DNA of 63,056 bases, the filler included, from Hyphochytrium catenoides (Eukaryota; Protista; Hyphochytriomycota), in the NCBI GenBank assembly GCA_900088475.1. It is 15 parts of 15 records of this genome, joined end to end, with 100 filler letters (N's around TTAATTAATTAA, not from the genome) between each part and the next. Parts side by side here need not be neighbours in the genome. Positions count along the whole stretch, not along the records: positions 20,744 to 26,040 come from FLMG01000974.1; 14 more parts are not named here. One strand, written 5' to 3'. Made by a program: the position numbers and the translations under genes. This document shows, piece by piece, positions 20,744-26,140 of the stretch. The notes below the pieces were generated by a model. That model ran no database searches. It saw only the letters and a program-made list of their open reading frames with translations, and was not told the DNA's origin. Numbering within the stretch: the first letter of the stretch is position 1; each line of letters starts with the position of its first letter.

Positions 20744-23700
20744 CTGCTTTGATGGGCTTCACTCACAGCACAATAATTGGTATGCTTCAGAACGCCCCAA
20801 AAAGTAGCACCCTACCCCCTAGTATTAGCTTCATAACTGACCCTGCGAAGCTGTCAGGGAGGCGTCTGAGAGACCTAAAGCTTGTTGCCGACATGAGGCT
20901 TCAAGAAGCCTTGGAAGGAGTATGTCAAGACTTTCCACTAGAGGTTTTCCGCACCCTCATGGAGGACAAGGACTTCTTTCGCAAGTACTTTGGTACGAAT
21001 AGCTCTCCCAATGAAGAAAGTCTGACAACCGACCCAACTCTAGTGAGGCTAGTCGAAGGCTATAAGGCTGCAACCACTCCGAGGGATATGAAGAAGTACA
21101 TCCTATCCCTCCTCGCTCGAGACTTTTCCTATCAGACCTTACGCAAGGTGCTACATTGTTCTACATGGTCCATCTATCAAGCACGGCTCCATGCAGTAAC
21201 GGAAGGTGTCGCAGCGGTACCCAAGTTATATGAAAAAGTCTCAAGAGACAGGGTAGGCTTGAGGTTCCTGACCCTGCGGCTATTCTTTGAGCATGGAGGG
21301 GTGCTGCGATATTCCCCGACCTTGCGGAACGGGAAACCCGTTACTTATCTAACGAATAACATTGTAGCACTACATGAGGAGTATCGAAAGTATCATGCTG
21401 ACCTCCATGACAAAACTGCGGTTGCGCCAAAGCCGTTTTCGTTATCCTATTTCAGAGAGTATATACACCAGATGGACTACAAGCCCGAGAGAGCTCTTAC
21501 ATGCCTCTGCGGTAACTGTAACACTTATGGCTACGAGAACTTTGCGCATATGGAGGAGCTGATGGAAGATATTTGCAAGCTGCTGCAGGATCCGGCGGAC
21601 AGAATAAAGTGTAGAGAGGAGCTGCAGAAGCTAATAACTGACTGTAAGCAGTATTTTTTCAACGACTTCAGGTCAAGTCTGAGTGAACAGAATGGCATAT
21701 CGTCATTGTGTCTGAAGCACACTCTCTCCTGTCCAATCGAGTCTGAAATGTTTGGCGAGCGCTGCCACCACGTGGAGTATCATCATGTGCAAAGCAAGTC
21801 GTAAGTGCCACGGAAAAGACCCTTAACAGATCTTCTTTTGGCATCCTAACTTGCTTCTTCCTTCTTTATTAACACTGCTCGTTTTTAGAAAGTTTCTCAA
21901 GACAAACCTGGAGACTACCTTCCAGAAGTTCATCACTCGTATCAAGGATCCCTCTCATAAGGAAGTGCCCACTGAAACTGTCGACGGTGTTACTTCTGCT
22001 GCTGAACTTGCGGAACAGAAAGGGGAGCTAAAGCGTGTGCTCCAAGATGTTTTACGGAAGCTTCGAAAGTTCGAGGCCCACTTAGCAAGGAAGAAATATG
22101 ACGCGATATCTCAGATGAAGATTCTTACAGGACTTCTGGCACATCAATGCTTAGTGATCTTTGACCACAAGCAGAAATGGTGTACGCTCCGGGATTTGAA
22201 CCCAGGACCTCTGTCTTTGATGCCGACACCCTAACCAATATGCACCATACACCAAACGTACTCTTGACTAATCTCCGTTTTTCTTTATATACCAGGGATT
22301 TTCCCCTCTGCGTCGTCCGCTGTACACTTTTTGGTTTCAGCGTCGATCACAGTTCAACAATGGGTGCCTATGTATCACCGAGAGACCCAGACGCAGCGCT
22401 TTGGAAAGCGTGGGGTGTCAATCTTTGGAGCCACATTTATCATACGAAGTAGAGATAAACCAGGTATATCGGTCCTGACATCCTTGAGCAGCCTCTACAC
22501 GGGACCTAAAGACCCACCGTACTGCTTGCTGTTCTGCGTCCCCTTCATAGGAGAGTATGATGTCTATCATGTCCGCCTTTCTTGCGATGATAGCAAGCAG
22601 GATTGGTTCCAGTCTGTAAGCTTTCTTAGTCTTGCCATCGCGGAGTTCCTATCTGCCCTTGAAAGCACAGGAGAGGGGCAGAAGATTACACAGTTCTACA
22701 TTCAAAGCGATGGAGCGATTAGCTTCTCATCTACGGCGTTTATGGTAGCACTGCCGGTTTCTGTGGAGGCGGAGCTACGAAAGCGCACCAATCTAGGTGC
22801 ACAGTCCAAGGGTGCCCGTGTCGTCGGGCATCTAATCACTGAAGCTGGAGGAGGAAAGGACCGGACAGACCAGGACTTCTCCGTGGTTACTCGTCATCTC
22901 CTTAATGCAGTAAAGTACAAGGAGAATGTAGAAGACGCCTCTGACATCTGCCGCGTTCTATCTGCCAAGCGTAATTCATACGCTATCAACGCAGAGATTT
23001 TTCTCAACCGCTCCACCGCTGGGCATGCAGAGAAGAAGGATACGGTAAAGACATTCTCGGGACAGGATACCTTTTACTACCGTGCCTACGAATATGATTG
23101 CCACGGAACGCTTACCGCCATCAAGCTATTTCATCATCACAGTATTGGGAGTGGCATGAAGCTAAATAAACAGGCAGTGGATGCGCTCTGGGCAAATGGA
23201 AGTGCTCCAGATATGACCGGAGCCTCAGGTAGACCTCTCTATCGGTGCGATCGACCATTTGAGCTCTCATGCATGACTTCTTATATCTAGAAGCGAAAGG
23301 TGAGGAGGCACGACATGACGATGTTACTCCCAAGAAGATGGTACAAGGAACTTGCACCTCTACTTCGGGGCCAACTTTTTCTACTGTTAAACCCCGCCAA
23401 AAGCAAAGGGAGTCCCAAAAAAAAGAGAGATCAGAACTCCTAAGAGAACAACCAATAGAAGAGGAGCAGAAAGCACTAAAGTGCGACAAATGCAACCGCA
23501 GCTTTCTCAGTTCGAAAGGCCTAAACAACCACCAGCAAGGAGGATTCTGTGAGGCTGCTGCGGTGGCAACAAAAACACCTTACGTGAAGATGAAGGAGGC
23601 AAAGGATCGCGCCCAGGAACACGATAATACAAAAGGAGGAGCCTCCTTGGCTGCTAATAGGAAGGCTACGGTAAGCCCTGCCGCGCCCCATTGACTGTTA

Positions 23701-25405
23701 ACCATAGAGAACATGAGAATACCTGAACTATGTTTCTGGACGCAGGTGAAGAAGCTGTCGGATCTTCTAATAAAGCTTAGGCGCAGGAAGGTGGACGTCT
23801 TAGGTGACGGATACTGTCAGGCGGCATCCATCGCTGCCAACTTCGAAAAGGCCGTGACGATGGAGCGAGTCAGGCAGGATACCTCAGCTTGGATGCTGAG
23901 AGATGTAGCTGACAAAGGTTTTATAAATGGTTGTTGTTCCAAGCTTAGAGATTCCGCCCAATATCAAACATATGCCAGAACCTACAAAGATTGTTCTGGA
24001 GTCCGTGTTGAAAGATCAGCTTGGGGAGTTACCGACACCCTAAGGGCATTCACGCTCTTGTCGCGGGTGCCCGTATGCGTAGTGATTCAAGACGCCCTCG
24101 AGTGCAATAAGGACGCATATAGCTGTATCCTTTTGCATTATCCGTGTCTTGCAGTGCAACAGGAAGGAGGATCAGAGCAGCAAGAAGATGGTCAAAATGA
24201 GGCAGGCTGTGATAGGACGTGGTCAGCCCTTACTCTGGACGAGATCTGTGAGCTAAATAGTGCAGAGTGGGTCTTCATCCTCTTCAATCAAACGACAGAG
24301 CACTATGATGCTCTTGTCAGTAAGGACTTCTCCTTATCTGACTACCATCAACACAACGACAGTATCGAGGCTTCTACTCTCGAGAAAGAACGGACAGGTG
24401 CTAGCTGGAGGAATATCCACCTTGCTCAGCGAGAAGCTCTTCGGCAGCACCGAGAAAGAGAAAGAGTGAAGGCGATGCCGAACGCTTCTGCAGGTGCAAT
24501 TTCTGCTGCTTCTCCCTTCTCCCAATACCATGGTAAGAACGGCATGGCCTCACCTGCGACCACGGAGGTAGAGATGCAGTCGCTACCGCGCGCCGAGGGC
24601 CCACTACAGGATGCCGATGTCATTAATACAGAGAAACGCGGGATAGAAGTTGATAGTCTGGAGCAATCGTCTGCTACCTTCGCAACCGTGGAGCAAGCTG
24701 TTGAGCGGCCTGCGAATGCTGCCGAATACCATAGGTGAGAGATGGTCATGTTTGACTCTGTAAGCTGTATTGGGTAAGAATCACTTTTCGCTCTGATGCA
24801 GCCACCAAGGATCTGAAGGAAAGGAAAGCTGTGGCTGCCACCTGAAAAAAATATCTGGTCAAAAGGAGAAAAGGCACCGGTACACGCAAGAGCAAACCAC
24901 TTTTCTCAAGGAAATGTTTGACCAGCACCTAACGTTTGGGGGAGCAAAGGTATCGCAGAAAAAGGCACACGAGGAGATGAAGAAGCGGTTCCATAACACG
25001 ACCGGCGACTATGCCAAGAGGCTACGCCTGGGGCCCGCTCAGATAGCCTCTTACTTCAGCAGAATGAAAGCGAAGACTCGAGCTAGGGCAGAGCTACTGC
25101 AACGACAGCAAGACGAGTCGTCAGCGCCTTCCTTGACAAGTGAACTGGTTGATGCAGGAGAAGGTCAGCCTTGTCAGAGTTCTGAATCAAGCAAGAGGAA
25201 GTTGGAAATCGAAACAAGCACTTCTCCATCTGCAATGGCTAAAAAGTTGAAACGTGAACACCTTACTGACCGCTTGGCATGTGGCAGTAGTTCGGGAGAA
25301 GAAAGACCTAGTAGCCAAATGCATGGACCACTGGCCCCGAATCGCCAAGATGAGCAGCTTCGGGATAGACCAACGCAGCACGGACAGCGCTCCTTGCAAA
25401 AATAA
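20744..25405 (+). mobile_element. Intron-containing Sola3-like DDD transposase fused to a zinc finger and an OTU domain; 5' end lost at contig edge; interrupted by a 179-bp insertion
   Basis: Phase-consistent GT-AG introns near 21801, 22463, 23228, 23670 and 24734. Motifs: CLCGNC; IFDHKQK-WVPMYHRETQTQRFGKRGVS (D at 22163); IQSDGA (D at 22709); EAGGGKDRTD (D at 22868); CDKC-x12-H-x5-C (23482-23550); OTU GDGYC...WG...HYD (23806-24309); C-terminal FLKEMFD...QIASYFSR helix bundle. The Sola3 assignment is from remembered motifs. Confidence 0.7.
22181..22359. mobile_element. 179-bp TG...CA insertion (solo-LTR/TRIM-like) with ATGG target duplication and antisense tRNA-like sequence
   Basis: ATGG at 22177-22180 and again at 22360-22363. 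The element starts TGTACG and ends TTCAACA. Removing it plus one ATGG restores AAA TGG GTG (K-W-V) in the transposase motif. Minus strand has A-box-like TGGTGCATATTGG (from 22247) and B box GGTTCAAATCC (22202-22192). Confidence 0.8.
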
Positions 25406-26140
25406 CCATCTGCTCTGCTTGCAAAAAGGTAAAGAGAGGCCACAAGTGTACCAACTTATGCTCGGACTGTCGCAAACCCAATACCACTGGGCATCGCTGT
25501 AAACGAGTCGTATCGCAGCTGATAGCCAGCCCGCCGCCAAAAGTAGCCACCGCTATTCTAACGTAAGCACCCGGTGCACTGGTGCACTGAATCATTGCAT
25601 ATGGTAGGAGGTCGTTCAATATAACAGTTTTATTGACGGACGCTGGTGGTCCAGTTACTCTTGCTCTGACGAGCAGGAACATCAATATTCTCAGGATTGA
25701 TAGGAGGAGAATAATACCAACAGCGGAAGCTGTCCCATAGAGCCTATCAAGCGAGAGCGATCGACACAAACCAAACTCTTCTGCAGCAGCAGCGCTAACC
25801 TTCTTGTGATCTGAGTGTTGATGAGGAGGTGGGGAAGTGCGGCAAACGCAGCAGCGTTCTTGGATAGTCCCTATAGGCCATACGTAATATTAGCCCTAAT
25901 ATTAACTATGGTCTACATTTGGAGACCCCTCATTGCCAAAGTTTCAAAGTTTCTTCCGGTTCTCTCAAAATTCCAGTTCTAAGGATGAAGTTGCAGTGGA
26001 GGACAGGGACGAGACAGTGTATATTGCAATGAAATGAACTNNNNNNNNNNNNNNNNNNNNNNNNNNNNNNNNNNNNNNNNNNNNTTAATTAATTAANNNN
26101 NNNNNNNNNNNNNNNNNNNNNNNNNNNNNNNNNNNNNNNN

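Follow-up and report, generated by a model that had tools for sequence, protein, structure and literature searches.

A stretch of 63,056 nucleotides (filler included) from the protist Hyphochytrium catenoides, assembled from 15 parts of assembly GCA_900088475.1 and called the window here, was found to contain a split gene that combines a transposase with an OTU-like cysteine protease module. Positions 20744-26040 of the window, which come from record FLMG01000974.1, likely hold the greater part of a transposase gene from a cut-and-paste DNA transposon of the Sola3 superfamily, with an OTU-like exon, in a copy that is broken. A preliminary description made from the sequence alone had read the locus as a Sola3-like transposase fused to a zinc finger and an apparently active OTU deubiquitinase domain. 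The present analysis covered the 20744-26040 piece, and its exons were searched and folded one by one.

The gene model was obtained by three-frame translation and inspection of the splice sites. As described previously, the gene has one spliced frame; it lies on the plus strand and consists of six exons (A to F) with about 1,390 codons. The four introns, of 88, 62, 75, and 67 nt, are all GT..AG, and their phases (2, 1, 0, and 2) match across the joins, so that one frame is kept. Short introns of this type are in keeping with a eukaryotic sequence. The frame is truncated at the left edge of the piece, and the 5′ end of the gene is missing. Exon A, from the piece edge (first full codon at 20746) to 21800, encodes the N-terminal region of the transposase, which is Cys/His-rich near its end, and is followed by intron 1 (21801-21888) with a GTAAGT donor at 21801. 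Exon B (21889-22180) has the first catalytic Asp block, IFDHKQKW, at its end. After an insertion (22181-22363), exon C (22364-23228) encodes the remainder of the RNase H-like core, with GKRGVS, SDG (Asp116 of the exon), and E160-G-G-G-K-D-x2-D169. Intron 2 (23229-23290) precedes exon D (23291-23670), which encodes a basic linker and then a C-x2-C-x12-H-x5-C zinc finger. Exon E (23746-24734), with 329 codons and no stop, lies between intron 3 (23671-23745) and intron 4 (24735-24801). Exon F (24802-25405) encodes a homeodomain-like helical domain (KRHRYTQEQTTFLKEMF...) and an acidic/Ser-rich tail and ends with a TAA stop. Read in frame, the core has IFDHKQKW followed by VPMYHRETQTQRFGKRGVS, YIQSDGAISF, and TEAGGGKDRTDQDF; downstream of it come the finger (C-DK-C-x12-H-x5-C), DVLGDGYCQAASIA, AWGVTDTLRAFTLLSRVPVCVV, and EHYDAL. 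Each motif quoted in the preliminary description was found at the place given for it. The sole break in the frame is the insertion, which bears in-frame stops. It had been recognized as such before, but it is 183 bp long and not 179 bp.

Exon E, which encodes about 330 residues and has its own introns on either side, lies between the zinc finger and the C-terminal domain. Its 329 stop-free codons and its codon usage (see below) speak against a chance open frame. The canonical acceptor at 23745 and the donor at 24735 bracket exon E in phases 0 and 2, as exons D and F require. When exon D is joined straight to exon F at the mapped sites, a stop codon appears within five codons. Exons A, B, C, and F match the same set of relatives (see below) and the finger is conserved among them, while exon E is unmatched. 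Thus, exon E is an addition to the family layout. These results confirm the earlier statement that the OTU-like module is part of the transposase frame itself, flanked by the finger on one side and the conserved C-terminal domain on the other. Use of an AG at 24822-24823 would give an in-frame isoform without exon E, although no pyrimidine tract accompanies this AG.

The OTU-like module occupies the first 200 codons of exon E (23746-24345), with Asp21 at 23806-23808, Cys24 at 23815-23817 (the Cys codon named previously), a WG helix, and His186 at 24301-24303. The last 129 codons (24346-24734) form a low-complexity linker, which is an open frame without BLASTP matches. The Asp/Cys loop reads KVDVLGDGYCQAASIA, in which the Asp residue of GDGYC lies at position -3 from the Cys residue. 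The WG helix (AWGVTDTLRAF at residues 92-102) is followed by a strand in AWGVTDTLRAFTLLSRVPVCVV, and another strand precedes the His-aromatic loop, EHYD, in WVFILFNQTTEHYDAL. In general form, V-x-GDG-x-C, WG-x3-[DE]-x-L-x-A with a hydrophobic strand, and a hydrophobic strand with HYD are all present in exon E in the order and spacing of OTU proteins. An Asp/Cys loop, a WG helix, and a His loop in such order and spacing are canonical for OTU. The three-part pattern occurred in none of 200,000 composition-matched shuffles, which is indicative only, because the pattern was defined post hoc; a two-part pattern occurred in 0.6% of 200,000 shuffles. Among the 30 Atlas clusters that are the nearest language-model neighbors of exon E, 24 carry OTU (PF02338), with a score of 0.92 and 174-178 shared features, a range that favors true family membership according to the Atlas calibration. 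Pfam recognizes only 20-35% of the members in these OTU-bearing clusters, and thus divergent OTUs are commonly missed by Pfam. It is likely that exon E is homologous to OTU proteases of the MEROPS C85 type, judging from its sequence, and the motifs and the Atlas neighbors together make its OTU identity probable. The earlier wording "apparently active OTU" holds for the Asp, Cys, and His residues, which are present; the OTU assignment itself was not confirmed by a profile or fold test, and "active" should be taken to mean only that these three residues are in place. VTD and Ulp1 were considered for exon E and rejected: the catalytic order is Cys before His and there is no Asp-x-His motif, which fits OTU only.

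What is the transposase to which this module was added? I performed an exhaustive search of 1.84 billion representative proteins with exon C. It was found that 71 relatives match at E<=1e-3, and for 15 relatives the E-value is 1e-10 or lower; the top one has an E-value of 5e-45 and 47% identity. They derive from environmental and run-level assemblies and from the transcriptome of Telonema subtile. The two Telonema ORFs (open reading frames), P0026 and P0081, have 1,155 and 1,447 residues, and their origin indicates that at least one protist transcribes members of the clade. No Pfam transposase family was detected in any of the 71 relatives. Exon C itself gave nothing from Pfam, PHROGs, NCBIfam, PDB sequences, or a word-index homologue search, and a metagenome scan using the core alignment gave no usable match. 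In the family alignment, the invariant columns are D116, E160, G162, G164, K165, and D169 in exon C numbering. A D-Y-K-Q-K block is also conserved among the relatives, and its counterpart is IFDHKQK in exon B. As the insertion splits the core of the present copy, the fold was modelled on a relative, P0009. The AlphaFold2 model of P0009, based on 53 aligned sequences, has a pLDDT (predicted local distance difference test) score of 79.8 and the order b1-b2-b3-a1-b4-a2-b5-a3. In a Foldseek search with this model, retroviral integrase catalytic cores came on top (E 3e-4, probability 0.99-1.0), followed by a terminase nuclease and RNase H1. When 48,161 PDB representatives were compared by VIA-align, all 16 matches at Z>=8 were integrases or DDE transposases, including mouse mammary tumor virus integrase (Z 9.8), Mos1 (9.6), Metnase (9.3), and IstA (8.2); Hermes, Sleeping Beauty, and the P element ranked below those. 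According to the P0009 model, the family core is an RNase H-fold DDE-type transposase.

The superfamily was assigned by comparing signature blocks by eye with two reference cores, Sola3-1_HM of Hydra and Caenorhabditis remanei CRE_08425, which Majorek et al. 2014 (PMC3985635) print in their supplementary file 5, where the core alignments of Sola1, Sola2, and Sola3 are given and Sola3 constitutes group E.13. All seven blocks of the present core are colinear with both references (PMC3985635), namely D[YWH]xQ, K-x-[LIV]-P-x4-E-x-Q-x2-[FY]-[FY], GK-x-G-x-S, SD[GN]A, ST-x-[LF], and E-x3-GK(D) among them. In the order Sola3-1_HM, CRE_08425, and present copy, the first Asp block reads KDYCQ, MDWSQ, and FDHKQ; the K..P..E.Q block KVLPSKFREGQKEYF, KVIPMQSLEPQSDFY, and KWVPMYHRETQTQRF; the GK.G.S block GKKGMSLHV, GKSGISVHV, and GKRGVSIFG; the second Asp block AKSDNASSY, LRSDNAGCY, and IQSDGAISF; and the last acidic block NEPCRGKD, SEAQGGK, and TEAGGGKD. 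Sola1 (E.10), Sola2 (E.12), and Pfam DUF7869 share a general block layout around the acidic residues with the present core. However, the signature blocks of Sola1 (SDNCGGQNRN and GHT) and Sola2 (DFAENYT and TDGCAGQYKN) do not fit it and are missing from it (PMC3985635). The Atlas neighbors of exon C are DUF7869 clusters (score 0.96). DUF7869 was rejected as the identity of the core, since neither the exons nor any of the 71 relatives has a Pfam DUF7869 match and the DUF7869 look-alikes are nearer to the Sola1 blocks. Thus, membership of the core in Sola3 is supported at the level of signature blocks, and together with the integrase-like model of P0009 this bears out the Sola3-type RNase H-fold core proposed earlier. 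Unlike the two references, the present clade is deeply divergent and is known mostly from protist and environmental data.

The other parts of the transposase were compared with the 71 relatives by BLASTP. Exon A matches the N-terminal parts of the core-bearing P0023, P0063, P0030, and P0007 (E 6e-13 to 1e-6), exon B aligns with the DYKQK block of several relatives both by BLASTP and in the family alignment, and exon F matches P0043, P0010, P0054, and P0060 (E 9e-12 to 1e-4), in agreement with the previous view of a C-terminal helical domain belonging to the family. A C-x2-C-x10-14-H-x3-6-C finger is present 3′ of the core in at least 15 relatives. Thus, the N-terminal region, the finger, and the C-terminal domain are family features and not fusions, and the zinc finger fusion postulated in the preliminary description is to be abandoned. 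The finger of exon D fits the C2H2/C2HC ligand spacing of Cys-x2-Cys ... His ... Cys/His, and it hits Pfam zf-C2H2_4 with an E-value of 1.9e-3, which is under the cut-off. Exon F hits the Pfam Homeodomain profile (PF00046) at profile positions 1-22 only, with an E-value of 1.5e-3 and 18.8 bits (cut-off 22.9). The relatives P0010, P0054, and P0060 have a chromodomain (E 7e-10 to 3e-8) C-terminal to the homeodomain-like domain, indicating that chromatin-related accessory modules vary within the transposase clade. Chromodomains are frequent in mobile elements.

The 183-bp sequence at 22181-22363, which was annotated on the minus strand, is regarded as an insertion into the exon because the family alignment shows D-Y-K-Q-K-x-x-P running uninterrupted through this site in the relatives. 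The insertion has AATGG at either flank. On its minus strand, ARAGORN detected a degenerate tRNA-like gene (22178-22261) with a 4-base "anticodon". The tRNA-like part has a canonical T arm (GGTTCAAATCC) and a 7-bp acceptor stem. It lies at the would-be 3′ end of the insertion, with about 100 nt of unrelated sequence upstream, a layout unlike that of a usual SINE (short interspersed nuclear element), where the tRNA head is the 5′ end. A search of Rfam with the insertion was negative. An intron was rejected, as there is no GT..AG pair that removes the 183 bp in frame, and so was a MITE (miniature inverted-repeat transposable element), as the ends are not inverted repeats. Since the insertion parts the first catalytic Asp residue from the rest of the core and adds stops, the present copy cannot make a working transposase. 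The remaining exons are all open, and therefore the insertion is probably recent.

Several observations weigh against the interpretation given above. Pfam searches at E<=10 with the whole of exon E, its 200-residue domain, or segments gave no match, OTU (PF02338) included, and exon E has no match among PDB sequences, PHROGs, or NCBIfam. Homologues of exon E were not found by a word search performed twice, by plasmid tblastn, or in metagenome and viral contigs, nor was a counterpart found in the 71 relatives by BLASTP, unfiltered phmmer (E<=50), or a motif scan. A single-sequence AlphaFold2 model of exon E had a pLDDT of 33.5 and was unusable, and the Foldseek result on this model was disregarded. 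Furthermore, about 60 low-complexity residues separate the VCVVIQ strand from the His loop. All these would be expected if exon E encodes another lineage-specific domain or a degenerate, non-catalytic remnant whose likeness to OTU is limited to short motifs. This seems unlikely, though, given that the order and spacing of three separate OTU hallmarks are as they should be, a combination never seen in the shuffles, and that most of the nearest Atlas clusters are OTU clusters whose own members largely escape Pfam. As for the superfamily, the Sola3 placement is a block-by-block match to two printed cores and not a scored Repbase search.

The status of the locus as a mobile element may also be questioned. 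Nothing convincing as terminal inverted repeats or a target site duplication was seen in the piece, whose edge cuts the 5′ end; the protein is long and multi-domain and is encoded with introns; and no close relative, with more than 50% identity, exists among the 1.84 billion representatives. These features would suit a domesticated, Sola3-derived host gene or a decayed copy of one. On the other hand, the conserved catalytic residues are all retained, the gene has been knocked out by the insertion, which would not be tolerable for a selected host gene, and the relatives, as is typical of mobile elements, are many and patchy and differ in their accessory domains, for example chromodomains. Domestication is therefore rather improbable. 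Could exon E instead be an independent, single-exon OTU gene that lies within a transposase pseudogene, between its exons? With the last part of intron 3 added, exon E is readable as a free-standing ORF of 341 codons on the plus strand (23713-24738; from ATG at 23713 to TGA at 24736), and the module is missing from all of the 71 relatives. Such a two-gene arrangement is very unlikely: the acceptor and the donor of exon E have exactly the phases of exons D and F, the direct join of D to F runs into a stop even though exon F is conserved in relatives, and the in-frame codon usage of exon E is like that of the other exons (r = 0.58, versus 0.17 and 0.02 for the shifted frames). A transposon gene with an internal OTU-like exon is thus the preferred reading.

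Two other features were observed around and after the stop codon of exon F. A 65-codon open frame on the plus strand (25369-25563), shifted relative to exon F, overlaps the stop codon. Its product is Cys/His-rich, with C-x2-C-x6-GH-x-C occurring two times, and it has no Pfam match and no counterpart among the 71 relatives. It could be a C-terminal zinc module lost by a frameshift or could be due to chance. About 470 bp 3′ of the stop codon, there is a near-palindrome (25874-25915) of 20 nt with 85% complementarity and a 2-nt spacer.

The family transposase is thus made up of four parts: the N-terminal region, an RNase H-fold core with an acidic triad, a zinc finger of the C2HC type, and a homeodomain-like domain at the C-terminus. 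In the present lineage, an extra exon for an OTU-like, papain-fold cysteine protease would have been placed between the finger and the C-terminal domain. The element was presumably mobile. Cutting and rejoining the element ends would be the task of the core, and DNA binding that of the finger and the homeodomain-like domain. The OTU-like module would strip off ubiquitin, or a modifier related to it, either from the transposase itself or from chromatin or repair proteins where transposition takes place. This deubiquitinase-type role and its substrates are suggested by analogy to Ginger1, Helitron, and Mutator elements, in which OTU and Ulp1 domains are found. The evasion of host control proposed in the preliminary description is speculative. 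The chances seem evenly balanced that a protist Sola3 lineage acquired an OTU deubiquitinase on a distinct exon inside its transposase, as a third independent recruitment of OTU after Ginger1 and Helitrons. If true, this would argue for ubiquitin removal as a recurrent need of DNA transposition. OTU, Ulp1, VTD, and USP deubiquitinase-type proteases recur in unrelated transposon classes, and if a superfamily that has received little study proved to have acquired one independently, the case for ubiquitin or ubiquitin-like control as a general requirement of DNA transposition would gain weight. The placement of exon E, internal and in an exon of its own, is unusual. In addition, the domain layout is now described for a deep Sola3-like clade outside Pfam coverage, some members of which also have a chromodomain. 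The locus itself is of limited practical value, as the copy is broken and a second OTU-bearing copy was not found in the searches made.

OTU with a transposase is known as a theme, and what is new here is an OTU-like module with Sola3 and its internal position. The preliminary description, whose author knew of no report of OTU in Sola, agrees with a literature search in which no paper linking OTU with Sola3 was found. It had named Helitrons for OTU cargo, which was incomplete: Ginger1 cut-and-paste transposases of Hydra, Aplysia, and an aphid carry a C-terminal OTU (Bao, Kapitonov and Jurka 2010, PMC2836005). OTU is present in Helitrons as well, Ginger1 and Mutator have Ulp1, and a transposase of Trichomonas has a USP-type domain (PMC2836005). 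The VTD-class deubiquitinases of Helitrons are catalytically active, while transposon OTUs are biochemically untested (PMC9741609, PMC2836005). The roles proposed for Helitron deubiquitinases, all unproven, include the shielding of transposition proteins from ubiquitin-dependent degradation (PMC9741609, PMC4067079).

Like the present gene, Ginger1 combines an RNase H-fold cut-and-paste transposase and an OTU-type cysteine protease in one polypeptide, with introns in some cases (PMC2836005). In contrast, its core is a Gypsy-integrase-like DDE core, and its OTU is C-terminal and recognized by pfam02338 (PMC2836005), whereas the locus of H. catenoides has a Sola3-type core and an OTU-like module that is internal, encoded by its own exon, and too divergent for Pfam. 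The OTU and VTD proteins of Helitrons and Helentrons also join the mobility enzyme to a deubiquitinase-type cysteine protease that the transposon encodes (PMC9741609, PMC4067079). Their mobility enzyme, however, is a rolling-circle Rep/helicase and not an RNase H-fold transposase, and VTD uses an Asp-x-His motif, which distinguishes it from the putative OTU of exon E.

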